A stretch of DNA of 64,000 bases. It comes from Mytilus trossulus. Its lineage: Eukaryota. Of this stretch, positions 1 through 64,000 are shown in pieces; positions within the stretch are counted from its first letter, which is position 1, and every line of letters starts with the position of its first letter. The DNA lies in contig NC_086386.1 of the NCBI RefSeq assembly GCF_036588685.1, positions 21,390,001 to 21,454,000 on the forward strand, written 5' to 3'. The notes beneath the pieces were generated by a model. The model did not search any database. It saw nothing but the letters and a program-made list of their open reading frames with translations, and was not told the DNA's origin. The translations under genes were made by a program, and so were the position numbers.

Positions 1-795
1 GTATTACGGGAAAGGGGGTTGAGATACATTGAACTTTGAAAGTCTACTTGTCATTTGCCAAAAAAGCGTTTGAAACCATTTGTTGATCTAAATATGCCTT
101 TGCATTGCTTTCCTGAAAATAGGAGTATGTGCTTTTGTATGAGAAAATGAAATAAACCACCCTTCCCAACAAACTGGGGATTGTTCATTCGATTGGATTA
201 TGTATCTCCAGTGGCAAATATTTCATGCAATTGAGGACGAGAACGAGTTGATAGTATCATATGGGTGGAAGGGATCAATAGTTAAGGTTTTAAGTCGTAT
301 TGTATCTACATGTATGCATGATTAGTCTTTAGGAACATCTTAATTAGTTCAGTCGTTGGTGTTGTTCCTATATATTTTATCCTGAGGATAGAATTGAACA
401 TATTTATTCATTTCTTTAATAAACATGATAACATTAAGTTAATGGTACGAAAACAAGTTATTTTTACATATAACATACATACATGTATTCTGCGCATGAC
501 GGACGACTACAAACAATATTACAAAGATGATTACAACCTAGCAATTTATCATTTAATGTGCAGTGTTGTTTATTTGTTTTCGTATTTTCTGCTTCGTTTT
601 CTGTTCATCTCCAATTATTTTGATGCTTAATTTCAAAGATCTTCAAATTTTCTTATAAATGTTAATAAATGAATACAAAATGGATTGTTTTTAATTTGAA
701 GGAATTGACAATGATATACTGTACATGATATACACGAAGGTCAGTGATTTTCACCGACGTAACTGTTAGTACATTATCTAGTGTCTTTATCTTAG

Positions 796-804
796 TATAT
801 AAAA
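796..804 (+). promoter_or_regulatory. Candidate TATA box of gene 1
   Basis: TATATAAAA about 50 nt upstream of the ATG at 850. Confidence 0.45.
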
Positions 805-849
805 TACCATAGTCGCATATATGTAATCAAAAATCTGGATATCGCAGTC

Positions 850-3800
850 ATGAAAGGTAAGAACTAGTATCTGTTATGTCGACCCAGTTATAATACATAC
901 ATATTTACAAATACATATGTCAAAACCAGTACATACAGGTACATTTTTGTAATTTGTCATTTGGAATTGCATATTTTTTTCTTCAAATTTTGTGAGATAC
1001 ATGGAAAATAGAAGTGTATTCTTATTATAACGACCTGATTAAACGTGAAAACAAACACGACAGACAGTAAACAACGACATCCACTGAATGACAGATGTTT
1101 GGCTTAGGACAAGAAACAATATTTTGATAAATGCATTTTTTCCGACTTTTCAATGAACTATATATAAAAAACCTTAAAAAATGGTTCTTAACATTTATAT
1201 TATATGTTTATTTTTAGAAGTCCCAATTTTGTTATTGGCATTGGTAGTGATTGTTGCTGGATGTAATAGAATAGTAAACGTACAGAGTAAGTGTTTACCT
1301 ATCTATACAGGTAGAGAAGAAAGAAAAAAATGGGTGCACACAAAATACTCTAATGAAAGTGTGCTCAATTCTCCGCACACGAACATGCGCATACATTCCT
1401 GCGACTAACATAACAGAGAATATTTTCAACATTCCAATCATTTCAAACAGCACAAGCGAGTATGTATTTTTAGTGACACCATGCATGCTTCAGAGCCTGC
1501 ATGCTGTGTATCAAATTCAGAGATTGAACCGTTGAAAATTAATCATAATGCTGTTAAATAAATGTAGCACCAACATGTTTATAAGGAGTAAATGCACTGT
1601 ACCTATAGCTAGACCTCAAACATTTATTTTATAATCTCAAAAAACATATTTTAAATAATTATGACCGCTGGTTTTCCCGATTGAATGGTTATACAATACT
1701 TTTTTGGGGGGCCCTTTATACATTGTATCTTGCTGTTCGGTGTGAGCCAAGTCTCCGTGTGGAAGGCCGTAACTTGACCTATAATGGTTTACTTTTATAA
1801 AAAAAAATTTGGATGGATAGTTAAGTTGTCTCATTGGCACTCATACAACATCTTCCTATATCTACATGTATATATATGATACATGTACATGTTGTACATG
1901 TATATGTAATATATTACAGTACCACGTTTAATCTTCAACTTTGTTTTTGTACATTTTACAATGACATGTGACAATGAATCATATACATGTCTTAAACATT
2001 GTACCGATTTATCTATCATTATTTTGTATACATGTACATATACGATGAATTTTATTCTAATGATATAGGACTTTCTCAAACCCATTATTTCTTTTCTCGT
2101 CCATGCTCAAACTGAAGACGAAGAAAATTGAAACTAATGTTCATTGTAATTTAGATCCATATTATCCGCATTTTGATAAGTGCAATATAATTTAAGGCGT
2201 CAAAAAAACAACCATAGCTAGAGAGTAACTGGTGTTATGTTGAAGATTCTATTTTGAAAGGGCTACAGGTACACTTGTATTCATATCTGAAATCATTTTG
2301 ACAAAAAATTATTGGAGCACTGAAATGATAATTTATATCCGAGGACTTCCATTCCACCACAATAAGCGTATGAAAATGAAACAACTAACAAAACCCACAT
2401 ACATGTACTTGTAGAAAATGCGAAAGGTGGTAACATGAATGGTCGGTATCTGGTAGCCAGTGGCGGCAACCAGGCTGTGCCTTTTAACGATGACTATATG
2501 AGTAAAGGTCATGAGTATTTTGATGTCTACTCACCAGAAATTGCAACACATTATGGTGAAGTGTTTTGGACCGACCAAGGCAACAACCTGATTCCACAAG
2601 AAATCATCGACAGATTTGCAGGTATATATAATAAATATCAAGTTCCTACATCAGAGGCGGATTTAGAGGGAGCCCCCCCCCCTCTTTTGGGATAAAATTT
2701 GGTTGCTTATACAAGGAATCACGGAAGCGTGACTGGAGCGGGCCCCCTCTTAGCTCAGTCAGTGGGCCCCCACTTATGAAAATTTCTGGATCCGCCACTG
2801 TACATTAAAAAAATGCTCGATTTATTTCACTTGACTGGGCGGAGTTTAACCGGTTCGCTCATAATAAACCAGTCTATAGATAGGTGTTTTAGGATAAACT
2901 CATAAATGCAGTGTCCAGTCATTCTTTTGTAAATTCCGTTGATGACACTGATATAATAGGTGATTAGAAATCAGTAATAATTATATCGGCAATCATGCTT
3001 ATCACACGCATCTTCAAATAGACTGTCCTAATGCAAATCAACACGTACACAACAGTGTTCTTCATCTGTTCTGAGGTCTTAATTTTCTATTTTTCTCTTT
3101 GTTTTTTTTAGGAAAAGTCCTGGCAATTACAGGTTACGAGCAGGACCAGGTTATGGTGTATCCACTAGATAAGCCAGGTTTAAATCCCGAGAATGATGTA
3201 TCTGTTCCAATCAACTGGGCATATAACCACCACTACATGGCATGGATGACTGGAAACCATTCTAAATTGGTAAAAATTAAGAATCCAGACCCAAGTGACG
3301 TCAGTGCTCACGGATCTCCAATGAAATGGGTAACAGTAGATTTGCCTTCAGCAAAGGATCGAGAGTACAAAAACGTTCCAACGAGTCAGATGTTTAGTGA
3401 AGGAAATGGTGGAGAGTCAAGGAAAAGTTTCCACGGTTATCCAGACGGATTTGCCCAATTAATTGACTCGCCCGACAAATGGCATATAACTCCTATGCAA
3501 ATTGATACACGTAACCGAGACTGTGGCGCCACACCACAAGACGTTCACAACTGTACCGTTTTCACACCAGGAGATGAACCACGACAGGCTAGATATGGTC
3601 GTGGCATTCCGAAAGGAGGAGCAATTTATTCTGGAATTCTAGAATGTCCATGCAATGGACGTTTTGGTGGTGACCCTGCGATATACGGTCCTAGCACAAA
3701 AACAAAATACACTCAGCACCATTACGCATTTGTTGTAGCGCCATCTTGTAAAACCCCCACGAAAAGTGCGACCATATGTTTTGATGCGGTAGCCAACTTA

Positions 3801-5213
3801 GGAGTCAAAGCAACTAAGAACGTAACCATGGTTTCCTCTTCAAGCGAAGTTCCTAGTGGCTGTAGTGTTGACTCAGAGTCTGATGGTTTAATAATTGTGT
3901 CTTACAACGAGTTTAAAAGTTCAAAACAATGTTCGACATCGAGTAAACGAACAGGAAATTTGAAATTTAGCACCGGTGTATCAATAAAAATTGAACTTTC
4001 TGGGGCTAGCACAATAACCTTGAGTGGACCTGCAGACGCATGGTTTGGAGTTGGTTTCAATGCTACACATATGGCCGACAAACCGTATACTTTAATTGTT
4101 AACTCTACAGGTGTATACGAACGGCAGATAGGTACTTGTGGAAGCGAGGCAGACCATTGTCCAGGAACTCCTTTGAAATCAAGCATTAAGATTGTATCCA
4201 ATACAGTCGTCGACGGTGTTAGAACAGCCGTCCTGACACGACCTCTAAAAGGTTTGACGAAAGAACATTACAGCTTTAACGCTTTAAATGCACAAATCAA
4301 CTTCATTTCTGCTATCGGTTCTTCTCAGGTCTTTGCTTACCATAAGATACATACTACCGGCATTATTGCGTTAATAGCAAGCAACGAACCAAACTGCATC
4401 TGTGAAGTAGGAGAAACAGGTATGATGTGTGATAATAATGGGTCTAACTGTGATCATTTCGTCAAAAACTGTGTTCCAGCACCTGCTGGGGAGCTGTTAT
4501 CTCAGAGAAATCCAACGTGTAACTCAATGACATATGCCGGCGGACTCCAATGTTGTAAACACAAACGTATAATGTTGGATGCTGACCAACCTATACGACC
4601 AGAACTCTTACGATATCACATGAAATTTCGCTTTTGGTTCCAGGAATACAAGGTAGTTGGTGCAAAAGTTTCTCATCATGATTTACCCCGTATTTATTAC
4701 CAAACAGAAGCTTGGGCAGGTGAATATGATATTCCCCCAGCATTTGCCCTGCCAGGAAAACCTATCCCGGGATATAACAACTGGCCATTAAACACACCAA
4801 CTCCTGGAACTAAATGTACTGGAAATTGTCCTTATGGGGACGATTGTGAATGTGTCCATACAATAGAATTCAAATGGACCGTGAGTAATATAAGACTGAT
4901 ATACGCTGGAGGTCACTGTCATGCCCCAGCGTGCATTGCTATGGAACTTTATAGGAACGACACTGGTCATGAGATGGAGCTGTTATGCAGACAAGTTCCA
5001 GTATTTGGCAAAGGGAACATTAAAGAGAACAAATACGACGAAGCTGGATATATAGCACTGCCTCCCTGTCTTTGGGGAAACGATACAGGTTTAGAACCAT
5101 CCGTACTATTGCCTAAAAATACACCTATGGTGGCCATTAAGCATAACAGGAACACTAAAGTGGGTCACTTTGGCGAAATGGCCTCCTGGCAAATGAGAGG
5201 AGTCAATTTCTAA
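850..5213 (+). CDS. Gene 1: secreted SURNod19-like / copper type II monooxygenase-like protein with an internal DOMON-like domain (~794 aa, 4 coding exons)
   Basis: Exons 850-856, 1218-1286, 2415-2621 and 3112-5213 join through GT..AG phase-1 introns (2385 nt = 795 codons including stop). The N-terminus MKEVPILLLALVVIVAGC is signal-peptide-like. Motifs YNHHY, EGNGGESRK, PMQIDTRN, ECPC, GGLQCC, GGHCH, DEAGYI and HFGEM follow the order I recall for plant SURNod19 proteins. WFGVGF..HM...RPL...AYH resembles DOMON. Confidence 0.85.
1218..1286 (+). CDS. Gene 1 exon 2 (signal peptide)
   Basis: tttttag acceptor and A|gtaagt donor; encodes VPILLLALVVIVAGCNRIVNVQ. Confidence 0.75.
1700..1863 (-). mobile_element. 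Dispersed repeat family A (agatataggaagatgtgg... head), partial copy
   Basis: Reverse complement of the copies at 51403 and 57707. Confidence 0.75.
2415..2621 (+). CDS. Gene 1 exon 3
   Basis: ttgtag acceptor and G|gtatat donor; in frame with ORF 2435..2695. Confidence 0.85.
2652..2800. mobile_element. Short MITE with CAG(A/T)GGCGGA terminal inverted repeats in intron 3 of gene 1
   Basis: cagaggcggat...atccgccactg, flanked by the direct repeat TACAT; GC-rich relative to the flanks. Confidence 0.7.
3112..5213 (+). CDS. Gene 1 exon 4 (2.1-kb exon holding nearly all catalytic-type motifs and the DOMON-like domain)
   Basis: Long polypyrimidine tract plus AG at 3110-3111; 704-aa ORF. Confidence 0.92.
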
Positions 5214-6426
5214 AATAATGTCATATATGTGGATATAACCCTTGTTTAGGTATTTTATCATCTTATATTTTTAGTTTAGACAAAAACATACTAGATCATT
5301 TGTGTACATCATTCTCAAATTTTCATATAATTAAAGCTTTATCAAATGTAATTGGCCATTACTTCGGTGACCCTATTGGACTGCACAGATATTAAAAATC
5401 TTTTTTTTTTATTAATAATTTTAAAAAGAATAGAAAATCTAAATCTAAGGTAGCATGGATTGGGTAGATATTTTTATTACGTGAAAAAAAACTTAATTAT
5501 GTATTTCATAACTTATGAAATCTGTAAAAGAAGGACTATCAACGCAGCAGACTGTCTTTTGCTGGATTAAAAACCAGAATATTACACACTTGATTATTTA
5601 AAAGACCGTGTCGAGTGGTATTGACGCTCGGTCAATTTGACAGACCGTATTGTATGATGACCTCCTAACAATCTATAGGTTTACATGCTGGGTCGCTTAT
5701 CATTGTCTTGAACTCGGCATCTGTATTCAACCTTTTACATCAGTTTGTATTTGTTCATCTATTCACATAAGCCCACATATGAAAAGGGGAATTAGGTTGA
5801 TGAAAAACTGATGATGTAGTACATGTATGGAGTTTCAAGAACCCTACCTGAACTAAAGTGTTTCGGAAGGGAATGCTGTGTCTTGTTTACCAATAGTTTC
5901 CGTTACGTTAACTATGAAAATGAAAACCCAGTGAATGGTCACATTTTTTAACGTTCAGGAACGAGCAACAAATAAAAAATAAGGTGGGTTCAGAATTCCG
6001 CAAATTGAAATATGCACTCCATAACGCCATCTAACTAGAATCAAATCGAAATTAAATCAGCAAAAAACGGGGAAGCTCAATAGACATAATAAAAAAAAAT
6101 CGTATGTACCTTAGAAATATATGAAATGCTGGATATGGTTATTGCACGTTAATGCAGTAGCAAATATTACAGTATTTTAATAAATAAATTTGAAAATGGA
6201 AATATGGAATGTATCAAAGAAACAACAACCCGACCAAAAAGACAATAGAAATCCACTATTAGGTCTTCAACCCAGCGAGCAAGAAAATAATGCATCAAGA
6301 GGTATGCTTTTATCTGGTCAAGTAAGTTTATTGAATGTTGTGTCAAGCAGATATATTGTGGCTTTGAAACAATTAAAACTGGAAATGTTTTTAATATACG
6401 GAAAACATATCATTTTGTTATATTTC

Positions 6427-12700: not shown

Positions 12701-13647
12701 TAAACGGAAGAACAACCTGTCTAGACGAAGGGTCAATTCTGATTTAATCTTTTTGATTTACATATACATGTATGAAATTGAAGACCTTGCCTATAGATAA
12801 CATTTTTGTTTTATGATATTCCGGTTTATCTAAATAATGTGGATCTACATTTTAAACTTAGCAAGGAATAACGAATACAAGTCCTTGAAATATGAGAATC
12901 CAGAAATTAAAGAAGGTTTTATTATATAGAAAATGGACAAAAAGTAACTAGTGTAAACATGAAGCTGTCTAATTTACAATTCTACAACATCTTTTGATTT
13001 TGATACAAATAAAAAGAAATAAGCCTGTCGAGTCAGTGAAATGTGGATGCCATCTAATTACTAGAAATCGAAGACACAAACAAAAGCTAAATATGTTCAT
13101 TGCTAAAAGTCCCGGTATTCTGTAAATGTAAACACTACATTATGTACCTCCTTTATACATTCCTATACGATGTACTGTACAACCTCTCGTTCATTTATAC
13201 TAACTGTTGAACTCTATGTGTACTCATGCATGGTGAACTTTACAATGAACACACGTTCGTGTTGCTCGTTCTTTAGATTTTCGTCGGGTGTTTTATTTTT
13301 TTTCGTTTTTCAATAGTTTGTGATATAAATTGAAGAGACGTGGTGTGATTGCCATAGAAACAACTATCCATAAGAGACCAAATGACGCAGATGTTAACGT
13401 CTAAAGATCGCCAGACGTCCTTCAATAATTGGCAATGTTGTGGTTTCGTCTGGAACATTTGTTTTTGATATGCCCCTGAATGTCGTCTCCGTTTTTGTAT
13501 TTTTTTTAAATATTTTTATTTCTAGGATATAAAAGTGCATCAATTTCAAACATATTAACAATAAATTTCATTGCATTACACATTTTAAGATATGTGTGTG
13601 GCTATTACATTTATATTTGTTATAAAACGTTATTATACTTCAGCATT

Positions 13648-15346
13648 ATGGAAAAGAAGAGCTTACGAATCGGGTTTGTTGGAGCTGGCGCCATTCACTT
13701 TGGACGAGGAGATTTGCCTTGGGCTCATGCTACAAGGTTAGAAAAGATGGGCCAGATAAACGTTCTTGCTATTGTTGATCCAGATACCAAAGTAGCAGAT
13801 AGTATATTAAAGGAAAAGCTGTCTTCAGACCAAACTAAGCAGTTCTACCAGGACTGTAAACTGTTAACACACCACAAAGATTTGATTGCATTGAAGCCGG
13901 ATGCAGTGTTTATAGGGATTCCCCCAGTATATCGCGGTTCATTAGATAACGGCCATGATATAGAGCTACAATTTATTAAGGCTGGAATTCATGTTTTTGT
14001 AGAGAAGCCTCTTTCAGTTGTTCCACCAGAGAAATTTGATCAGTACAAGGATGAAATACAGAGAGTCAGTAGTGAGAATAATGTGATTGTATCTGTCGGT
14101 TACATGTTTAGGTAGGCAGAAGTACAATATATGATATAGTATTTAAAAGTACAGTTGTGGCATCTCAGGAGTTCAATATTTTCCCCAATTAAAAAAAGTA
14201 TCGCAAAAATAAACATACACTGTATACACTGTACACATACGCCTATAGTTCTAGTGCAGATAAAGTTCTCAAACAGGGACTCTGTATCAAAGAAAATAAT
14301 TATTATCTTTCTGAGAAGGTCAAAACAATTCTGATGCACATTTTTGTTCTTTAATAAGTTGGTATAATCATAAAACGTGTATCATTTGTATAATTTGTTT
14401 GCATTCCAAATGATTTGAATATTATTAGCATCTACGCCTTTTGAATAATTCTACAAAGGATGAAAACTTTTAAGTGTACCATTTCTCCAACAGTAATTGT
14501 TTTCTTTTCATGCAAGGTCAAAATGATACATATTGAGAAGCTATATTAAATTTCCATCAGGATTACTGATTGCATCCTTTAATATGACAAAGCCGTATTC
14601 TATGATATGCATTAAAAACTGTAAAGTGCAGTTCCACAATATTATTTTTATTAATGTCTTTCAGATACCACGACGCCATTATCAAAATGAAGGAACTTAT
14701 TAAAGAACACGGAAAGAAGGTCATGGCCTTCAATGCCCGATATTACTACGCTTACTCAGATGGCGTCAATAAATACTGGTACAACCAAAATCTAAGCGGT
14801 GGACCAATAGTTGAACAGGCTACACATCTATGTGATTTAGGGAGATATATCGTTGGAGATGTCAATTTAGACACGGTTCATACCATCATGCTCAGAGATA
14901 ACGACCCATCTGGGGCCGGATGTCTATCACATTTGCCACATGATGGCGAGGAAGATATTCCCCCTGGTCAAAAACTCCCCAGAGTAACGCTTAGCCATTG
15001 GCGATTTAAAGACGGTGCCGTTGGGACACTGATGCATTCTATAGCCATACCCGGAAGTAGATACGAAGCAACAGTTGAGGTTCAATTAGACGGAATGCAG
15101 TTGTCACTAATTCGACCGTACGAAGACGAGTGTATTTTACGTGTAAGGGATATCAAGTCAGGAGATCCAAACAAAGATGTGGATTACACATTCAGGGGAA
15201 ACGACTCTTACTATAATGAACTTAGTACCTTCGTGAAGGCAGTTAAATCTGGAGATAAGTCTGGCATTAAAAGCTCGTATGAAGATGCGTCGAAGACGTA
15301 TTTGTTAACATGGAAAATAAGAAGAATGGGAGAACAGAACAACTAA
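13648..15346 (+). CDS. Gene 2: Gfo/Idh/MocA-family NAD(P)-dependent oxidoreductase (381 aa, 2 coding exons)
   Basis: Exons 13648-14111 and 14665-15346 joined by a phase-2 GT..AG intron give VGYMFRYH. Rossmann motif RIGFVGAG, HVFVEKP, and GGPIVEQATHLCDL. A probable non-coding first exon ends at AG|gtaatg near 12234. Confidence 0.92.
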
Positions 15347-44600: not shown

Positions 44601-47600
44601 TACATATGAATATATAGTCAATACAATTAGACTGCACAAATAGTACAGCTGCAGTATATATCATGTTATTTTGTAGGAAGACAAGAAAGAGGATATAGAG
44701 GAGGTAATTATAAAACATATGGCACAGTATGCACAGATGAGATTGTACATGTATATGAACAACATGAGTTTAATATTGAGTTTCCAATAGTCTATTACAA
44801 CTCTATATAATAGATTCATTGTTGAGTTAGAATGATAAGAGAATAATGGTATACTCCTCAAATAAATATTTGCATGATTTGCATTAAAAAAAAATAAAGT
44901 TATCATTTTATTACCTCAGTTATTAAAAGCGTCATTTTAATCAATTAAGTTTGTCTGCTAATTTGAATGGGAAAAGGGACCAAAATATTTGTAAACACAA
45001 AAGAAAAGTAAATCCAAAGATCTACATAACTGGTGAATAGAAAAATAGAGCAAAGGAAAACAAAAATATTCTGTTTATGATTTTTTATGATTGTAAAATT
45101 ATATGTAAAATTATATTATTTTTAGTTTATATACTGAATATAGATAGTTTACCTTGATAGATATTTATTTACAATTTTCAGGAACAACAAAAATCAGACG
45201 AGAATAGTAATGATATGTCCCAAGAAAACGAAAATTTAACTGAAGAAGCTAATATTGATAAAGAAATTCAAAATAATGAAATCATAAATAATTACACAGA
45301 TGATAAGGAAAACATTGATACTGACCAAATTTTAAAACCCGAAAATGATTATGTTAATAATGATAATATAGAAAAGTCTGTAGGGGAAAATGATAATGGC
45401 ATAGAAGAAAATAAAACTACTGATCAAGAAATAATAAACAATGACCCTGACCAAAATGAACAAACGGAACAAAGTAAGGAAATTGAAAACGATAATGAAA
45501 GTGAGACAAAAACTGACCCCAAAGATAAAACAATAGATGTTAATATAACTCCTTTAAAAAATAACAGTATTGAACCAAATGAAAAAGAGGGAGATGTAAA
45601 CGATAATAATGAACCACAAAATGAGGTACAGGAGGAACAAACTCCCCATAATGAAACTAAAATTGAAATTGAGGACGGCAATTCTGATAAAAATGTTGCC
45701 GAAAAGCAAAATCGAAAAGTTAAAATTTATGAAAGAGTTGATTTGGATGACAACTTGGACCAGCGTAAACCAGATGATGTCACTGGCGAAAAGAACACTG
45801 AACAGATCACCCAAACAGTATTGATCACTCCTATATAGTAGACATAGAATTTTTCCCAATTCTTATATTACAATTCTAAATAGCCACTTTCTATAACAAA
45901 TAAATACTCTGCTTTCACATACTACTAACTTTGACAAACTAACAATGATACTTACCATTTATCTCTCTATATATGTATATGTGTATACAATTTAGTACTC
46001 TTATTTGTATCACAACTAATATTTGTTTCTGCTTGAACAGCATGATCTACTAGAGCTTCATATAGATGCGTTTCGACTTAAAAAAATAATAATTTACAGT
46101 AACGATATTAAAATAATTTCTACCGAATAAAAGTGTAAAAGACTTACTGTTAATTTTAATGTCATTTTATTGTAATTTTCTAAAATCAGTTGCATTGTAG
46201 CTACTAAAAATGGTGAAGTCAGTTTTATTCAGTTTGAAATTAGAATATTATGTGACATTATGTATATGTATGATTGCAATATTTCTGTTTTTGTTTTCTT
46301 CAACAATTAAATACAATTGTGTATGTTTCCTTTCAGATTAAAGTCAAAGGACAAGAAGATGAGGTAATTACTATTGTTCTGCTGCCATATAAACTATGAA
46401 TGAATCTGCTGAGATATTTGTTTACAGCGTTCCAAACTTATATAAAACCTAAAATATATAGCATCGATATCAATACATGTTAAATACTTCTCTCTCGTCT
46501 AGCTGGCTTTATGTATCTATATTACTCAATAATGAAACCATAGCAAAAAGTGAAATCACAAAATAATGAACTCCAAGGAAAATTAAAAAAAGGAAAGTCC
46601 CCAATCAAATAGCAAAATAAAAAGTACAAACACATCATATTCCTGACTTGGTACAAGCATTTTCTTATGTAGAAAATTGTTGATTGAACCTGGTTTTATA
46701 GCTAGCTAAACCTCTCACTTGTGTTAGTCTCATCAAATTCCATTAAAATGTCACCGATGCGTGAACAAACTAAATTACTGTTAACTTGCTAATAGACCAG
46801 CATGTCATAAAAAAAAGGCAACAGTAACGTGTACATACCGTTATACTTGGAGTTTGTTTTACTGATCACCGTTTTTAAGCCTGTTAGTATTCATAGAAGG
46901 TTGCCACTGATGTAGACGGTACACACATAGTGTGAAACAATGTAATTATGTAATGGAAAAAATGAAGAAAATTACATTGATGACCAAATCTTCAGTTTGT
47001 TCTAGCTACGTTTCGTTTATTATTTGTGCATTTTTTTCAGATTTTTTTTAAAATATAGTTTGAAAGGATTTTCCAATAGTAGATTGATGTCTGATAACTT
47101 ACAGAAAGTGCTATTCTTACTTGTTGCTCATTATACAGTTTTCTTCTTTAAATGTCTGTATGCATAAGCTTCCAATTGAGTGATTGTACCGCTATTGCAT
47201 ATTGTTATTTACATTAGGAATTTATTTGTTTGTTTTTTGGTTTTTTTAGCAAAAGGAAGACGTTGAAGATGAGGTATATATTAATAAACAATATGTTCCT
47301 ATTCAAGCAAGATGAATAAACAGTTAAAAATGATAAAAAAAAATGATATTAGTTTTTGTTTAATTATGTTTGTAGTCATCTTATGAATGATATGTTATCA
47401 TTACCAATCAGAAACCTATAAACACTGTTTCCACTACTGACCACAGGACGAGAATATAAACAAAGATAACAACCATATTAAACATTTTAAAGTTCAAATA
47501 TATAGACAATGATGTAATTATGCATACCTGTCACGTGTCTACAGCTAATAGCTTGAACAGTATCATTCTGCAAACAATTATTTTAAATTATACCAGTATA

Positions 47601-50600
47601 ACTTTTAAAAAACCGATAAGCAACGCACATTTTGACAATATATTTACTTAATGTAATTGCACCATAAAAGGTTAAAAAGTTTTATTTACAATTGAATTTG
47701 AACAAACATTGAATCCTTAGTATTTCAATACAACATTGATATTGTTATCTGTTTGTCATTGATTATTAAGCCAAAAACTACCATATTACCGATAGCAGCA
47801 AATCCTTTCTCAACTGCTAACGTATCTGAAATCACTTTGCAGGCTGAAAACTCTGGATCAGAAGAAACTGCATCGTCGAGTCGGGTTACTACTCCCGATC
47901 CAGAGGAAATAGAAAGAAATATCCGTAAAATAGGAATGAAAAAATCTACAGATTTCAAGGTAGGTAACCAGACAGTTTAAAAGCGAAATTCAAATTATGT
48001 CTCTTGCTATCTTCGCTCGTAATGCAAACTATTAGTAGATCAGGTATTAAGACGTTTTGAATTTATTCTTTTTTACATCTTTTCTTTTATTTTAGATGAA
48101 CCCTAAGTAGCTATATAGACTAAGTATCAAATATATGAAATTTAACAAAAAAGAAACAAACAAAAGCACACGAAAGTAAATCACGCTTAACCCACCAGAA
48201 AAGCTGTAAATAGTCAAAGTACATGATATGTGAAACGTAATCATATGGAAACATAAAACAATTAATAAGAGTATGTCTATAAGGAATATCCTATTTCCAT
48301 TTTATGTTACAATGGAATACTATTATAATAACTCATATTTGACGATTATAAATATGCATATTTTAGCCTCAAGGCGAGTTAAGCAAGGTTCTCGTTACAC
48401 GGAAAATGGAAGAACATAAACGAAAGGAAAAAGACCACGGAAAATGGACAAAGATGAAAAATATATTTCGTGTTAAAGCAAAAAAGATTAAAGTTGCTAG
48501 CTATCAAAACAATGACAACAAAGACCACAAAAAAGAAGACGGGCGAAATGCTGACTCTGACGACGAAGGGATTCACCGAGAAAAGACTATTGCTCCGTTC
48601 ATGAAGGAATATCATTATAAAAAACAGATGGATCACGTATTGGATGAACAACATGTTCGGGAAAAGCAACCTGATTTCAAAGATAGAATTAAAGATTCAG
48701 ATGATGACGATGAGGTAATGTATACAGTTCACACATTTAACAAATTTGTCATATTACCTTTTATATCTTATACATTTCATTCAACTACCAATTAAAACGA
48801 ATGTGACATACCGAATTAAACTATTCACCGGATTTGTAATACATGTAACATAAGCAACATGACGAATGCCACATATGGAGCAGGATCTGCTAACCCTTCT
48901 GGAGCACATGAAATCACCCCCTGTTTTTGGTGGGGTTCGTGTTGCTTAATCTTTAGTTTTCTATGTTGTGTCTTCTATAAACTATTATTTATCTATTTGT
49001 GGGTTTTTTTAGCCATGACGTTGTCATTTTATTTTTAATCTAAGAGTTTGACTGTCCCTCTGGTATCTTTTGTCCCTCTTTTATAACTTGTGTATATTAA
49101 AATCAAGTCTAAATGCATATGAATAATTGATCAGTAAAAAAAAATATTTAACTGGTGCACATGATTGAAATACGTGTATTTTAGCATAAAAATGTAATTT
49201 TTTTTAAATATATTTTCATAGCTATTTTGTTTTCTATCCTGATTATTACTCTAAACTTCCAGGAATTTGGTGGCATTGTTGATGATGAAAAGAAACGTAG
49301 AGAACATGAAAAAATCGAACAAACTCGAATAGAAAAACTCAATGAAAAGAATAAACATGAAGGAAAGAAACCTTTACAGTCTTCCAAAAACGCGGGGGAG
49401 AAAAGGTATACAAAAGGATCAGAACATACGAGAAAGAAACAAATGGGTGGAGATCAAGGCAAAGAAATGGATGAACTAGAAAGAGCAAAACGTAAACAGA
49501 GAACTGAGGATCAGGGAAAAGATAGTGGTGTCGATAGTCCGGACTTTAAAAAGGAAACAAGCTTTATTGAAAACAACGAAGAAATGGAGGCTGTTGAAAT
49601 GACAGAACCACCGCCAGGTTATATCAGAGACAGCACAGGTCAAATCATTGTAAGTATAACACTTTCAAAAATGTATTCTGGATTTAAATATTGACAAAGA
49701 ACTTTCAATTTTCAATTTTCAACCAAAGCGTTGTAAATAAACTCATGACATTATATATACCAAGATTCAAAATTGGGCTTTGCCTGCGAAGAAATGAAAC
49801 TGTAGGTTAGATTTTTCTTCTATAAAATCTTTATTTTTATAAAGTAAATTTGAAGGTACAAGTAATAAATGCATGTCACTAGACATATTCTTCTATGTCC
49901 CTCGTACATTTTTATGAGACAAATATTACGTTTCATCCAATTGAAATCAATAGTTTTGAAAAGTTTAGTCCTGTATGAACGAACAAATGTATTGCTGGAA
50001 TGTTGTTTACACAAATTTACATCAATTAGATAATCATTAATACGTAAATATTACAAACATATATTGTTACTTCCTTTTCAAGTACTGTCTCTCTTTTTTT
50101 TAAAGCGTCTATATGATGGAAAAGTTATGACACAGGAAGAAATGCAATCCATATTTCCCACGGCTAGACTTGGAATGTTATTCCATGTACCAAGATTAAA
50201 ACGAACATCACATGGGCGTCCTACAGGCGTAAGTAATATATATACTATACTCTTTATTTTGAATACCTTTCGTTACCTATTCAATTTCTATCAGCATTTT
50301 TTAAGGGAGTTGGCTTCTCAGTATCAAAGTAATTAACTTTCCAAAACACTAGTTTATATTGAAAGGGGATTAATAAAGGAGTCCAAAGAGCAAAAAAAAT
50401 ATATAGGTCACCGTGCTTGTTTTCGATATATAAGCCATTGAAATTTTGGCGGGAAAATATTCTCTCTTGACTTTTCATAGCTTTATCATCGACAGGTTGA
50501 AGCTCTCAAAAACTGTTAAAAAGTAATTAAAATTTTATCAGACTTTAACAGATGGCTTATCATTATACATGTAAAAGATTTACAAAAAGAAAATTGGGGG

Positions 50601-56444: not shown

Positions 56445-57110
56445 TATACAACCTACCACATCAACTACTAAAACTACCATGCTTATATATACAACCTACC
56501 ACATCAACTACTAAAACTACCATGCTTATATATACAACCTTCCACATCAACTACTAAAACTACCATGCTTATATATACAACAGACCACATCAACTACTAA
56601 AACTACCATGCTTATATATACAACCTACCACATCAACTACTAAAACTACCATGCTTATATATACAACCTACCACATCAACTACTAAAACTACCATGCTTA
56701 TATATACAACAGACCACATCAACTACTAAAACTACCATGCTTATATATACAACCTACCACATCAACTACTAAAACTACCTTGCTTATATATACAACCTAC
56801 CACATCAACTACTAAAACTACCATGCTTATATATACAACAGACCACATCAACTACTAAAACTACCATGCTTATATATACAACAGACCACATCAACTACTA
56901 AAACTACCATGCTTATATATACAACAGACCACATCAACTACTAAAACTACCATGCTTATATATACCACAGACCACATCAACTACTAAAACTACCATGCTT
57001 ATATATACAACCTACCACATCAACTACTAAAACTACCATGCTTATATATACAACAGACCACATCAACTACTAAAACTACCATGCTTATATATACAACCTA
57101 CCACATCAAC
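56445..57110. repeat. 43-bp minisatellite, variant 1 (about 15 homogeneous copies)
   Basis: Unit atacaac(ct/ag)accacatcaactactaaaactaccatgcttatat. Confidence 0.95.
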
Positions 57111-57706
57111 CTTTAACACTACCAAACTAACGTATACAACAGACAACATAAACCTTCAATTTAAAAAAGAAGATGTGGTATGATTGCCAATGAGACAACT
57201 GTCCACAAGAGACAAAAATGACACAGACATAAACTACCATACTAATATATGCAACAGACCACAACAACTTCCAACACTACCAAAATTACGTATACAAATG
57301 ACCACATACACCTTCAACACTATCATGATTACATATACAACAGACAAAAACAACCCCAAACAATGCCATGTGCACGGATACAAACAAAACACATCAACCA
57401 ACAACACTACTATACGTATATGAACAACAATCCATTTGACCACCAACACTATCAAGCTCACGTCAACAACAAACCACATCAACAACCAATATTACCGTGC
57501 ATGCTCATGTATACAACAGACCACATCAACCACCAACCCTACCATACTCGTGTATACAACAAACCCTATTGACCACCAAAACTACCAAGCTCACGTCAAT
57601 AACAGACCACATAAACAACCAACACTACCATGATCACGTAAACAATTATAGATTACATCAACCACCAACAATACCTTGCTAATGGATACAAAATAGTTCT
57701 TCAATT

Positions 57707-58128
57707 AGATATAGGAAGATGTGGAATGAGTGATAATGAGACAACTCTCCATCCAAAAAACAATTTATAAAAGTAAACTATTATAGGTCAAGGTACGTCC
57801 TTCAACACGGAGCATTTGCTCACAACGAACAACAAGCTATAAAGGGCCCCAAAATTACTAGCGTGAATCCATTTAAGCAGTCAAACCAACGGTTTAATCT
57901 ATTCAAAAAATAGGAACCAGAAACACGTATAAATTACAAAAAACAATCTACTGTACATCCAATTCCTGACTTAGGACAGGTGCAAACATTTGCAGCGGGA
58001 TTAAACGTTTTAATGGCACCACATTTTTCTAACTTTTTCTGAAAAAAAAGTATATACCATCACAACATAAAAAGAACACATGATAAAATATCAATTGGAA
58101 GGCTTAGCTCAGTCAAAAAACGTAAGTT
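57707..58128 (+). mobile_element. Dispersed repeat family A inserted into the degenerate part of the satellite
   Basis: Collinear with 51403-51830. Confidence 0.8.
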
Positions 58129-58269
58129 AACACAACACTATCATGCTTCACGTTAACAACAGACCTCAACAACAACCAACACTTAGTCTACCATGCGAAC
58201 ATACACAAAATCAAACAAATCAACCCCTTACGCTACCATGCGCATGTAAACAGCAAACCATATAATTAA

Positions 58270-61200
58270 GCAACACTACTATGCTCATGTCAACAACATA
58301 CCACATAAACCACCAACACTACCATATCCAAGTATACAACAGACAACATCAGCCACCAACACTACCATACCCATGTATACAACAGACAACATCAACCACC
58401 AACACTACCATACCCACGTTTACAACAGACAATATCAACCACCAACACTACCATATCCACGTTTACAACAGACAATATCAACCACCAAAACTACCATACC
58501 CACGTTTACAACAGACAACATCAACCACCAACAGTACCATATCCACGTTTACAACAGACAATATCAACCACCAACACTACCATACCCACGTTTACAACAG
58601 ACAACATCAACCACCAACACTACCATACCCACGTTTACAAAAGACAACATCAACCACCAACACTACCATATCCACGTATACAACAGACAACATCAACCAC
58701 CAACACTACCATATCCACGTATACAACAGACAACATCAACCACCAACACTTTCATATCCACTTATACAACAGACAACATCAACCACCAACACTACTATGC
58801 TCATGTCAACAACATACCACACCAACCACCAACACTACCATATCCACGTATACAACAGACAATATCAACCACCAACACTACCATATCCACGTATACAACA
58901 GACAACATGAACCACCAACACTACCATATCCACGTATACAACAGACAACATCAACCACCAACACTACCATATCCACGTATACAACAGACAACATCAACCA
59001 CCAACACTACCATACCCACTTATACAACAGACATCAACCACCAATACTACCATATCCACGTATACAACAGACAACATCAACCACCGACACTACCATACCC
59101 ACTTATACAACAGACATCAACCACCAACACTACCATATCCACGTATACAACAGACAACATCAACCACCAACACTACCATATCCACGTATACAACAGACAA
59201 CATCAACCACCAACACTACCATACCCACTTATACAACAGACATCAACCACCAACACTATCATATCCATGTATACAACAGACAACATCAACCACCGACACT
59301 ACCATACCCACTTATACAACAGACATCAACCACCAATACTACCATATCCACGTATACAACAGACAACATCAACCACCAACACTACCATACCCACTTATAC
59401 AACAGACAACATCAACCACCAACAGTACCATATCCATGTATACAACAGACAACATCAACCACCGACACTACCATACCCACTTATACAACAGACATCAACC
59501 ACCAACACTACCATATCCACGTATACAACAGACAACATCAACCACCAACAGTACCATACCTACGTATACAACAGACAACATCAACCACCAACAGTACCAT
59601 ATCCATGTATACAACAGACAACATCAACCACCAACACTTCCATACCCACGTTTACAACAGACAACATCAACCACCAACACTACCATACCCACTTATACAA
59701 CAGACAACATCAAACACCAACACTACCATATCCACGTATACAACAGACAACATCAATTACCAACACTACCATATCCACGTATACAACAGACAACATCAAC
59801 CACCAACACTATCATATCCACTTAATTCAACAGACAACATCAACCACCAACACTACCATATTCACTTATACAACAGACATCAACCACCAACACTACTATA
59901 CCCATGTATGCAACAGACAACATCAACCACCAACACTACCATACCCACGTTTACAACAGACAATATCAACCACCAACACTACCATACCCACTTATAAAAC
60001 AGACAACATCAAACACCAACACTACCATATCCACTTATACAACAGACATCAACAACCAACACTACCATATCCACGTATACAACAGACAACATCAACCACC
60101 AACACTACCATACCCACGTATAAAACAGACAACATCAACCACCAACACTACCATACCTACGTATACAACAGACAACACCAACCACCAACAGTACCATATC
60201 AATGTATACAACAGACAACATCAACCACCGACACTACCATACCCACTTATAAAACAGACAACATCAACCACCAACACTACCATACCTACGTATACAACAG
60301 ACAACACCAACCACCAACAGTACCATATCAATGTATACAACAGACAACACCAACCACCAACACTACCATATCCATGTATACAACAGACAACATCAACCAC
60401 CAACACTACCATATCCACGTATACAACAGACAACATCAACCACCAACACTACCATATCCACTTAATACAACAGACAACACCAACCACCAACACTACCATA
60501 TCCATATTTACAACAGACAACATCAACCACCAACACTACCATATCCATGTATACAACAGACAACACCAACCACCAACACTACCATATCCACTTATACAAC
60601 AGACATCAACAACCAACACTACCATATCCACGTATACAACAGACAACATCAACCACCAACACTACCATACCCACGTATAAAACAGACAACATCAACCACC
60701 AACACTACCATACCTACGTATACAACAGACAACACCAACCACCAACAGTACCATATCAATGTATACAACAGACAACATCAACCACCAACACTACCATATC
60801 CATGTATACAACAGACAACATCAACCACCAACACTACCATATCCACGTATACAACAGACAACATCAACCACCAACACTACCATATCCACTTAATACAACA
60901 GACAACACCAACCACCAACACTACCATATCCATGTATACAACAGACAACATCAACCACCAACACTACCATATCCACTTAATACAACAGACAACACCAACC
61001 ACCAACACTACCATATCCACTTAATACAACAGACAACATCAACCACCAGCACTACCATATCCATGTATACAACAGACAACATCAACCACCAACACTACCA
61101 TATCCACGTATACAACAGACAACATCAACCACCAACACTACCATATCCATGTATACAACAGACAACATCAACCACCAACACTACCATATCCATGTATACA

Positions 61201-64000
61201 ACAGACAACATCAACCACCAACACTACCATATCCACGTATACAACAGACAACATCAACCACCAACACTACCATATCCACTTAATACAACAGACAACACCA
61301 ACCACCAACACTACCATATCCATGTATACAACAGACAACATCAACCACCAACACTACCATATCCATGTATACAACAGACAACATCAACCACCAGCACTAC
61401 CATATCCATGTATACAACAGACAACATCAACCACCAACACTACCATATCCACTTATACAACAGACAACATCAACCACCAACACTATTATACCCACTTATA
61501 CAACAGACAACATCAAACACCAACACTACCATACCCACTTATACAACAGACAATATCAAACACCAACACTACCATATCCACTTATACAACAGACATCAAC
61601 CACCAACACCACTATACTCACGTATACAACAGACAACATCAACCACCAACACTACCATATCCACTTATACAACAGACAATATCAAACACCAATACTACCA
61701 TATCCACTTATACAACAGACAACATCAACCACCAACACTATTATACCCACTTATACAACAGACAACATCAAACACCAACACTACCATACCCACTTATACA
61801 ACAGACAATATCAAACACCAACACTACCATATCCACTTATACAACAGACATCAACCACCAACACCACTATACTCACGTATGCAACAGACAACATCAACCA
61901 CCAACACTACCATATCCACTTATACAACAGACAACATCAACCACCAACACTACCATATCCACGTATACAACAGACAACATCAACCACCAACACTACCATA
62001 CCCACGTATAAAACAGACAACATCAACCACCAACACTACCATACCTACGTATACAACAGACAACACCAACCACCAACAGTACCATATCAATGTATACAAC
62101 AGACAACATCAACCACCGACACTACCATACCCACTTATAAAACAGACAACATCAACCACCAACACTACCATACCTACGTATACAACAGACAACACCAACC
62201 ACCAACAGTACCATATCAATGTATACAACAGACAACACCAACCACCAACACTACCATATCCATGTATACAACAGACAACATCAACCACCAACACTACCAT
62301 ATCCACGTATACAACAGACAACATCAACCACCAACACTACCATATCCACTTAATACAACAGACAACACCAACCACCAACACTACCATATCCATATTTACA
62401 ACAGACAACATCAACCACCAACACTACCATATCCATGTATACAACAGACAACACCAACCACCAACACTACCATATCCACTTATACAACAGACATCAACAA
62501 CCAACACTACCATATCCACGTATACAACAGACAACATCAACCACCAACACTACCATACCCACGTATAAAACAGACAACATCAACCACCAACACTACCATA
62601 CCTACGTATACAACAGACAACACCAACCACCAACAGTACCATATCAATGTATACAACAGACAACATCAACCACCAACACTACCATATCCATGTATACAAC
62701 AGACAACATCAACCACCAACACTACCATATCCACGTATACAACAGACAACATCAACCACCAACACTACCATATCCACTTAATACAACAGACAACACCAAC
62801 CACCAACACTACCATATCCATGTATACAACAGACAACATCAACCACCAACACTACCATATCCACTTAATACAACAGACAACACCAACCACCAACACTACC
62901 ATATCCACTTAATACAACAGACAACATCAACCACCAGCACTAACATATCCATGTATACAACAGACAACATCAACCACCAACACTACCATATCCACGTATA
63001 CAACAGACAACATCAACCACCAACACTACCATATCCATGTATACAACAGACAACATCAACCACCAACACTACCATATCCATGTATACAACAGACAACATC
63101 AACCACCAACACTACCATATCCACGTATACAACAGACAACATCAACCACCAACACTACCATATCCACTTAATACAACAGACAACACCAACCACCAACACT
63201 ACCATATCCATGTATACAACAGACAACATCAACCACCAACACTACCATATCCATGTATACAACAGACAACATCAACCACCAGCACTACCATATCCATGTA
63301 TACAACAGACAACATCAACCACCAACACTACCATATCCACTTATACAACAGACAACATCAACCACCAACACTATTATACCCACTTATACAACAGACAACA
63401 TCAAACACCAACACTACCATACCCACTTATACAACAGACAATATCAAACACCAACACTACCATATCCACTTATACAACAGACATCAACCACCAACACCAC
63501 TATACTCACGTATACAACAGACAACATCAACCACCAACACTACCATATCCACTTATACAACAGACAATATCAAACACCAATACTACCATATCCACTTATA
63601 CAACAGACAACATCAACCACCAACACTATTATACCCACTTATACAACAGACAACATCAAACACCAACACTACCATACCCACTTATACAACAGACAATATC
63701 AAACACCAACACTACCATATCCACTTATACAACAGACATCAACCACCAACACCACTATACTCACGTATGCAACAGACAACATCAACCACCAACACTACCA
63801 TATCCACTTATACAACAGACAACATCAACCACCAACACTATCATATCCACTTATACAACAAACAACATCAACCACCAACACTACCATATCCACGTATACA
63901 ACAGACAACATCAAACACCAACACTACCATACCCATGTATACAACAGACAACATCAACCACCAACACTACCATATCCACTTAATACAACAGACAACATCA
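58270..64000. repeat. 43-bp satellite, variant 2 (with 40- and 44-bp variants), running off the end of the window
   Basis: Unit atacaacagacaacatcaaccaccaacactaccatatccacgt, more than 130 copies. Confidence 0.97.

Follow-up and report, generated by a model that had tools for sequence, protein, structure and literature searches.

A putative PHM/DBH-type copper enzyme of the mussel Mytilus trossulus with a cytochrome-type DOMON domain predicted between its copper domains

Introduction

Can a copper enzyme of the PHM/DBH type carry its own electron supply within a single chain? PHM and DBH rely on diffusible ascorbate to reload their coppers. The question is raised by a gene in a 64,000-nucleotide stretch of the genome of the mussel Mytilus trossulus (contig NC_086386.1, positions 21,390,001 to 21,454,000 of the forward strand), which we call the window and by whose positions all features are numbered below. 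The gene lies at 850-5213 on the plus strand. A sequence-only reading of this locus had proposed, from a series of short motifs, a secreted enzyme related to PHM and to the plant SURNod19 proteins, with a DOMON domain inserted between two copper sub-sites.

We followed up this proposal by homology search, structure prediction, structural alignment and phylogenetics. The reading that we favor, at a rough probability of 55%, is that the gene encodes a secreted, disulfide-rich copper enzyme of PHM/DBH type that belongs to the wider SURNod19 superfamily and has a DOMON of the b-type cytochrome kind inserted between its copper domains. Within this reading, we infer copper binding, heme binding, the direction of electron flow and monooxygenase chemistry.

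Results

A predicted PHM/DBH-like core

Searches with the window protein used its last exon (exon 4) alone, and for full-length work its close homologue P0001 stood in. P0001 is a protein of 794 aa annotated as 'Hypothetical predicted protein [Mytilus galloprovincialis]'. The two share 98% identity over exon 4 and an identical splice model, and the N-terminus of P0001 matches the N-terminus encoded by exon 2. Residue numbers are those of P0001 throughout.

An AlphaFold2 model of P0001, computed from an alignment of 74 sequences, reached a mean predicted local distance difference test score (pLDDT) of 88.9 and a predicted template modeling score of 0.77. Foldseek searches of the PDB with this model ranked human DBH first (4zel_B, E 4.7e-9, probability 1.00), and also returned the cytochrome domain of CDH (4qi3_A, probability 1.00) and PHM (6nck, probability 0.89). 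We then ran VIA-align on Foldseek's top chains. The model aligned with PHM chain 6ala_A at Z 15.5 (246/297 aligned, root-mean-square deviation (rmsd) 3.7, model 57..794, chain 60..324) and with DBH chain 4zel_A at Z 14.8 (263 aligned, model 45..793, chain 196..496). About 25 more PHM entries scored Z 11.3-13.8, and sugar-binding CBM9 modules and PNGase F-type chains reached only Z about 6. The PHM-type fold that the sequence-only reading had anticipated is thus borne out at the level of the model, which supports a PHM/DBH-like core with both sandwiches in the catalytic arrangement. At the sequence level, a phmmer search of exon 4 against the PDB gave chance matches only (E > 1).

PHM and DBH, and also TBM and MOXD1, share this two-sandwich core in the same mutual arrangement; PHM and DBH likewise have HH in their N domain and HxH...M in their C domain, and are secretory. 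Unlike them, the mussel protein has a small sub-domain at residues 293-373 and a Cys-rich linker, and unlike DBH it has no DBH-type C-terminal dimerization domain. The coordinates of these and the other features are collected in Table 1.

Table 1. Positions of exons, domains and candidate ligands of the gene in the window.
Feature	Position	Strand	Basis
Exon 1: start codon, first 7 nt of the coding sequence	850..856	+	Sequence; joint 856>1218 (X1 and X4 contigs)
Exon 2: hydrophobic N-terminal segment; with exon 1, putative signal peptide	1218..1286	+	Joints 856>1218 and 1286>2415
Exon 3 (NMNGRY...IDRFAG): the conserved N-terminal (CuH-type) domain begins here	2415..2621	+	
Exon 4: 88% of the coding sequence (700 codons and the stop)	3112..5213	+	Open reading frame; joint 2621>3112
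His134-His135, putative CuH ligands	3228..3233	+	Conservation counts; alignment A4
His202 (FHGYP), candidate for a third or additional CuH ligand	3432..3434	+	Conservation counts
Met223 (PMQIDTR), candidate CuH ligand	3495..3497	+	Conservation; weak alignment with PHM His172
Small alpha/beta sub-domain (residues about 293-373)	3705..3947	+	Secondary structure; precedes the DOMON; kept in DOMON-less relatives
Inserted cytochrome-type DOMON, predicted (residues about 374-520)	about 3948..4388	+	VIA matches; gap in DOMON-less relatives; Pfam DOMON in relatives
Met415, putative axial heme ligand	4071..4073	+	Conservation counts; alignment A4
His505, putative axial heme ligand	4341..4343	+	Conservation counts; alignment-end offset
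Cys-rich linker with GGLQCC (residues about 521-590)	4389..4598	+	Invariant Cys columns; SURNod19 profile match starts here in relatives
C-terminal (CuM-type) beta-sandwich	4599..5210	+	VIA to PHM/DBH reaches residue 793/794; SURNod19 match 582-652 of exon 4
His696-Cys-His698, putative CuM ligands (HxH)	4914..4922	+	Conservation counts
His780...Met784 (HFGEM); Met784, putative CuM Met ligand	5166..5180	+	Conservation; alignment-end offset

Conserved candidate ligands for two coppers

Translation placed every motif named in the sequence-only reading where it had been reported: in the N-terminal part NHHY (3225-3236), PMQIDTRN (3492-3515) and ECPC (3642-3653), and in the C-terminal part GGLQCC (4539-4556), GGHCH (4908-4922, with His codons at 4914 and 4920) and HFGEM. 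We counted how often the candidate ligands among these are kept in 120 close homologues and in another 148 representatives. Fragments are common among them, and each count covers aligned rows only. His134 and His135 are each His in all 115 close homologues and in 80 of 81 representatives. At the other site, His696 and His698 are kept in 120/120 close homologues (88/90 and 88/89 representatives, respectively), His780 in 119/119 (82/83) and Met784 in 117/117 (83/83). Met223 is present in 119/119 close homologues and 100/101 representatives, and His202 in 119/119 and 86/96, with Lys in eight of the latter. In alignment A4, which holds 60 sequences down to 33% identity, His134, His135, Met223, His696, His698, His780 and Met784 are all invariant; His202 alone among the listed candidate residues is not.

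DBH binds CuH through His262, His263 and His333 and CuM through His412, His414 and Met487 (PMC4846438). Met784 and Met487 have the same offset from the end of the alignment with DBH: 9 residues before 793 in the model and 9 before 496 in the DBH chain. In the PHM alignment Met784 stands 10 residues before the end (794), which corresponds to chain position 314 (324-10). PHM Met314, the residue mutated in PDB entry 1yi9, is one that we take to be a CuM ligand. We regard the predicted CuM triad, His696-x-His698...Met784, and the predicted CuH pair, His134-His135, as well supported by this conservation.

For the third ligand of CuH we consider Met223 and/or His202, on a neighboring strand or loop, as candidates. 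The position of the third CuH His of PHM may hold Met223 in the mussel protein, with His202 nearby. Of the two-copper pattern drawn in the sequence-only reading, then, the HH and HxH...M parts stand as invariant, its third CuH His is ambiguous, and the conserved His202 was not on its list.

A probable cytochrome-type DOMON between the two sandwiches

In the model, the segment between the two sandwiches is closest to the heme-binding kind of DOMON. VIA-align matched it to the CDH cytochrome chain 4qi7_B at Z 12.8 (137 aligned, rmsd 2.6, model 325..517, chain 3..189), followed by other heme-b DOMON chains (4qi3_A, Z 12.5; 6jt6, 11.7; 1d7b_A, 11.6; 2ivf_C, 10.6; 7b04_C, 9.6). The insert had been delimited from sequence at about 3970-4375, in agreement with the domain borders found here. 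Its proposed motifs are also in place: WFGVGF (4041-4058), the Met of NATHM, RPL (4239-4247) and the His of AYH.

The Met and His of this segment, Met415 and His505, are present in 120/120 close homologues each, in 112/117 and 112/113 representatives, respectively, and without exception in A4, so the Met/His pair of the sequence-only reading holds; heme binding by this pair is a prediction from sequence. In Phanerochaete chrysosporium CDH (PcCDH), heme b is ligated by Met65 and His163 (PMC11112829). The spacing between Met415 and His505 is 90 residues, compared with 98 for these two CDH ligands. Measured from the end of the alignment to 1d7b_A, His505 stands 14 residues back in the model, and His163 of PcCDH stands 17 residues back in the chain.

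The position of the DOMON between the N-terminal (CuH-type) and C-terminal (CuM-type) sandwiches is supported by structural alignment and by a sister subfamily of protist proteins that do without it. The alignment of P0248 (632 aa) with P0001 covers residues 32-373 and 530-788 of the latter and leaves out the DOMON, and a word search with P0248 found at least 20 proteins among 120 listed rows with at least 95% coverage and lengths of 601-694 aa, including one from Emiliania huxleyi (P0302). We aligned eight such DOMON-less relatives with four DOMON-bearing proteins (A3). The DOMON-less rows are cleanly interrupted where P0001 has residues about 376-496 and 510-535, and His134, His135, His202, Met223, His696, His698, His780 and Met784 are invariant across all rows. 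The subfamily, which is uncharacterized and about 33-37% identical, keeps the same N and C domains, the 293-373 sub-domain and the HH, H202, M223, HCH and H..M residues, and is without residues about 376-535, the DOMON together with a short Cys knot. Formally, this difference may reflect a gain or a loss of the DOMON.

The insertion site is a hot spot for additions. In many protist homologues of about 900 residues, a Cys-rich stretch of some 100 additional residues precedes the DOMON, and P0064 carries a ricin-B lectin at the site (residues about 469-578, 29 bits).

Evidence against a heme-copper enzyme, and a DOMON of another kind

Several results count against this assignment. The Pfam profiles of copper monooxygenases, Cu2_monooxygen (PF01082) and Cu2_monoox_C (PF03712), to which the sequence-only reading had looked, matched neither the window protein nor eight homologues at E <= 1, and none of 60 relatives at E <= 0.001. 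A profile of the family itself found 0 matches among PDB sequences at E <= 10. The Pfam DOMON profile (PF03351), likewise named in that reading, did not match the window protein at E <= 1; it matched 13 of the 60 relatives at E <= 0.001 (best 1.4e-5), and relatives scored 16.7-25.7 bits, all under its 32.7-bit gathering cut-off. The third CuH position is a further difficulty. We modeled a fragment of 131 residues, from the start of exon 4 to Asp226 (pLDDT 87.6), and compared it with 48,161 chains. Residues 1..131 aligned with PHM 90..175 at only Z 3.0/2.9 (ranks 6-7), tied with unrelated sandwiches, and this weak alignment puts Met223, not a His, at PHM position 172. From PDB entry titles, we take the CuH residues of PHM to be His107, His108 and His172; residue 172 is the one mutated in entries titled 'H172A, CuH absent'. 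A second comparison of the fragment had no PHM among its 23 rows. Since the score is tied with unrelated folds and PHM is missing from the second comparison, the equivalence of Met223 with PHM 172 is only a hint. Finally, the DOMON of DBH has the same fold as the CDH cytochrome and is without heme axial ligands (PMC4846438), so a DOMON beside such a core need not be a cytochrome.

This last point opens the most serious alternative: a PHM-like two-copper enzyme whose DOMON is not a cytochrome, and would instead bind a sugar, another small ligand or a partner, or play a structural or regulatory part, with the coppers reduced directly by ascorbate. A structural or regulatory role has been proposed for the DOMON of DBH, the lectin of P0064 at the same insertion site hints at contact with glycans, and the Pfam DOMON scores all stand under the cut-off. 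Against this stand the conservation of Met415 and His505, their resemblance in spacing to the heme ligands of PcCDH, and the ranking of the structural matches, where the best are all heme-b chains (Z 9.6-12.8), ahead of the sugar-binding CBM9 modules. We judge a DOMON of this other kind to be unlikely, though it is the strongest of the competing explanations.

Membership in the SURNod19 superfamily and the case for a non-enzyme

The sequence-only reading had also linked the protein to SURNod19, a claim that holds for its relatives and only indirectly for the protein itself. Exon 4 matched Pfam SURNod19 (PF07712) at 20.5 bits, under the 25-bit gathering cut-off, over exon 4 residues 582-652 and profile positions about 266-330 of 377; P0001 scored 20.6 bits. 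The profile matched 41 of the 60 relatives, down to 33% identity, at E <= 0.001 (best 1.2e-12), and no Pfam family besides SURNod19 and DOMON was matched in these 60. Relatives above the cut-off scored 29.3-47.8 bits, led by P0171 (47.8 bits), P0175 (45.0), P0172 (44.8), P0158 (41.3) and P0214 (40.6). Their matches span profile positions about 178-375, which map from the part after the DOMON to the C-terminus; the N half of the profile is unmatched in the window protein and its relatives alike. Because relatives pass the cut-off, transitive homology places the protein in the SURNod19 superfamily; it is no formal Pfam member. A six-frame SURNod19 search was silent in the mussel genome and also in 14 control genomes, and is hence uninformative. 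PF07712 may already sit in a PHM/PNGase F clan.

The plant and fungal SURNod19/MtN19/NOD19 proteins are secreted or membrane-anchored, and their biochemistry is uncharacterized. Plant members have about 400 residues and, unlike the mussel protein, no room for a DOMON. One of them, bean Nod19, has 404 residues and is a copper-responsive target of the copper-economy microRNA miR398 (PMC3882225). We regard this link as circumstantial support, by analogy, for a possible copper role. In the literature searched (subscription journals and supplements lay outside its scope), we found no link of SURNod19 to copper monooxygenases, and SURNod19 and DOMON were mentioned together only in an unrelated domain census. 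A paper from 2026 (PMC13355928) does not contain the words copper and monooxygenase. Judged by listings, this literature also holds no animal or algal SURNod19 member, structure or biochemical activity, in agreement with the earlier remark that no such protein has been characterized in animals. Members of the family are already in databases as hypothetical proteins.

Could the protein then be no enzyme at all, and instead a binding or metal-buffering protein built on the PHM/PNGase F sandwich, for instance a lectin-like or a copper-sequestering stress protein? No biochemical function is known for any SURNod19 protein, as two papers state (PMC9632046, 2022; PMC10326430, 2023), and PNGase-type chains align to the model too (Z about 6). 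The match to PHM/DBH is far stronger (Z 15 vs 6) and extends over both domains in their catalytic arrangement, and the conserved residues form the exact HH / HxH...M pattern of the catalytic coppers. We hold a non-enzyme to be improbable.

An intact, spliced and transcribed mussel gene

The gene model comprises four exons whose coding sequence sums to 2385 nt, or 794 codons plus a stop. All exon borders are AG/GT, and every junction is in phase 1. We aligned contigs of public sequencing runs to window positions 600-5500 and found each intron spliced out by a GT..AG joint: 856>1218 in contigs of runs X1 and X4, 1286>2415 in contigs of X1, X4 and X13, and 2621>3112 in contigs of X1, X4 (2 contigs) and X13. 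X13 is recorded as metatranscriptomic RNA-Seq of an invertebrate gut sample; that the other runs are RNA is a guess. Since spliced contigs cannot derive from the genomic DNA of this locus, the gene is real, intact and transcribed. The 5' untranslated region reaches back to at least 677, with a contig of X4 covering 677-854, and contig cover extends the 3' untranslated region to at least 5445.

The product of exon 3 is homologous to the N-termini of protist relatives. The N-terminus encoded by exons 1 and 2 is hydrophobic and corresponds to a low-pLDDT helix at residues 6-27 of the P0001 model, consistent with a putative signal peptide. On the strength of this segment and the many invariant cysteines, the protein is putatively secreted.

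A paralogue lies on the same contig, 58 Mb away (G000:C14:79937826-79939922). It is 81% identical over exon 4, forms one open frame of 709 codons and matches P0002, a protein named for M. edulis.

Two further observations concern the transcribed region. Three short upstream ATG frames are visible by eye at 700-849, each of which ends at a stop ahead of the main ATG (850). Where the transcript starts decides whether it includes them; the X4 contig reaches 677. Introns 2 and 3 contain interspersed repeats (about 1584-1911 and 2568-3059). There, in contrast to the exons, hundreds of contigs from all four runs stack up with loose ends, and their summed depth is very high.

The notion that this is no working mussel gene at all, and rather contamination from an alga, a transferred copy that is dead or an assembly error, might draw on its nearest non-bivalve relatives being marine protists and on 88% of the coding sequence lying in one intron-less exon; it is far-fetched, and as regards contamination and a broken gene it is refuted. 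Against it stand three spliceosomal introns with junctions in contigs of three runs, the intact 794-codon frame, the paralogue, the homologues from further named bivalve genera in a clade with a support of 99 (see below), and the location of the gene within 64 kb of mussel DNA, with mussel repeats inside its introns.

Distribution in bivalves, protists and contigs labeled viral

Scoring of 8000 candidates yielded 746 homologues, and an exhaustive search of representatives (50% identity clusters) found 3712 at E <= 0.001, 645 of them at E <= 1e-30, numbers well above what chance would give. Named bivalves with the gene are Mytilus (2 species), Pinctada, Mercenaria (2 copies), Dreissena and Mactra. 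Among named protists it occurs in the green alga Pterosperma, the diplonemid Namystynia and the stramenopile Incisomonas, in the dinoflagellates Gymnodinium, Pelagodinium and Alexandrium, and in the haptophytes Prymnesium, Haptolina, Chrysochromulina and Emiliania. DOMON-bearing protist forms are 55-65% identical to the mussel protein.

We computed a quick tree of 128 rows under LG+G4, leaving out P0055, a 601-aa fragment. All seven named bivalve rows fall into one clade of 28 rows (Shimodaira-Hasegawa-like approximate likelihood ratio test support 99), together with 21 unnamed rows. Seven of these 21 have unrelated residues directly upstream of the Gly-Lys-Val at the border of exon 4, fitting a shared intron position. 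Ten others start at a Met just inside exon 4 and are uninformative, two start slightly downstream, and two are full-length.

In this tree the bivalve clade seems to branch from within the protists, but the branches concerned have a support of only 87-93. We ran an approximately unbiased (AU) test on a subset of 46 rows, made up of 10 of the 28 rows of the bivalve clade, 31 of 91 other ingroup rows and five of nine remote rows. A tree with the protists as one clade and the bivalves outside was not rejected (p 0.734), and this constrained tree was 20 log-likelihood units better. Because the AU test keeps the bivalves-outside tree, nesting of the bivalves is not demonstrated. Horizontal spread of the family is plausible; a transfer into bivalves is not demonstrated.

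In contigs of prokaryote genomes, two motif-pattern scans (A1 and A5), which see the chosen motifs only, found no relative. A full-length, DOMON-bearing member is present in two IMG/VR contigs labeled viral (170 kb, L004 4962-7121; 87 kb, L003 2942-5050); their viral origin is that of the label. This member shares 38% identity with P0001 across 794 alignment columns (BLASTP E 5e-158) and keeps all candidate copper and heme ligands. Its neighborhood is compact and intron-free, with SWIB, two kinase, RING/ZZ and FolD genes.

Other features of the window

Downstream of the gene, two open reading frames on the plus strand (13594-14115 and 14654-15346, within 13594-15346) are apparently two exons of an oxidoreductase of the Gfo/Idh/MocA type, with Pfam matches to GFO_IDH_MocA (56.9 bits) and ox_reductase_C (143.5 bits). 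Three low-complexity frames on the same strand (45215-45838, 48406-48795 and 49227-49694) have a high content of Asn, Glu, Asp and Lys and may together make up one gene as its exons; the two of them that were scanned had no Pfam match. The last part of the window, from 56445 to its end at 64000, is taken up by a satellite array with a 43-bp unit repeated about 175 times; its plus strand is strongly enriched in C and A (GC skew about -0.8). Long spurious open reading frames at 56445-64000 arise from this array.

Discussion

A heme-copper enzyme of the kind that we favor would work as follows. The heme, held by Met415 and His505, would accept electrons one at a time from an external donor, for example ascorbate or a partner of cytochrome b561 type in the membrane. 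It would hand them to the CuH site, formed by His134 and His135 with Met223 and/or His202, and from there an electron would reach CuM, at His696, His698 and Met784. O2 would be activated at this copper, and a C-H bond of an extracellular or lumenal substrate hydroxylated. By analogy with the lectin-bearing relative P0064, a weak hint and the only one to a substrate class, the substrates might be glycoconjugates.

Two known systems come close to this scheme. DBH also combines the core with a DOMON, but its DOMON is N-terminal and is without the Met/His pair. CDH, an auxiliary enzyme of LPMO (PMC11112829), contains a DOMON of the same heme-b fold, with similar Met/His spacing. By analogy, the proposed roles would be alike as well: a mobile heme domain that gives single electrons to a copper oxygenase. 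They differ in their architecture, since in CDH the heme domain shares its chain with a flavin dehydrogenase and the copper enzyme that it reduces is a different protein, whereas the mussel DOMON is built into the chain and there is no flavin domain.

A bolder version of this reading holds that the protein is the first animal self-reducing heme-copper monooxygenase, that its electron-transfer copper is of a His2Met type, that the family moves via giant-virus-like contigs and that it passed from plankton to an ancestor of bivalves. We offer this combination as speculation that is unlikely to hold in full.

If the favored reading is true, a cytochrome placed between the copper domains would be a new solution to the electron supply of PHM/DBH-type enzymes, equivalent to a CDH-LPMO pair in one chain. 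It would also provide the first biochemical hypothesis for the SURNod19 superfamily, which has been studied in plants and plant-pathogenic fungi only as proteins up-regulated in stress or nodulation, with their function unknown. Given the 3712 representatives and the 55-65% identity between mussel and algal proteins, a probably important oxidative reaction in the sea may depend on this family.

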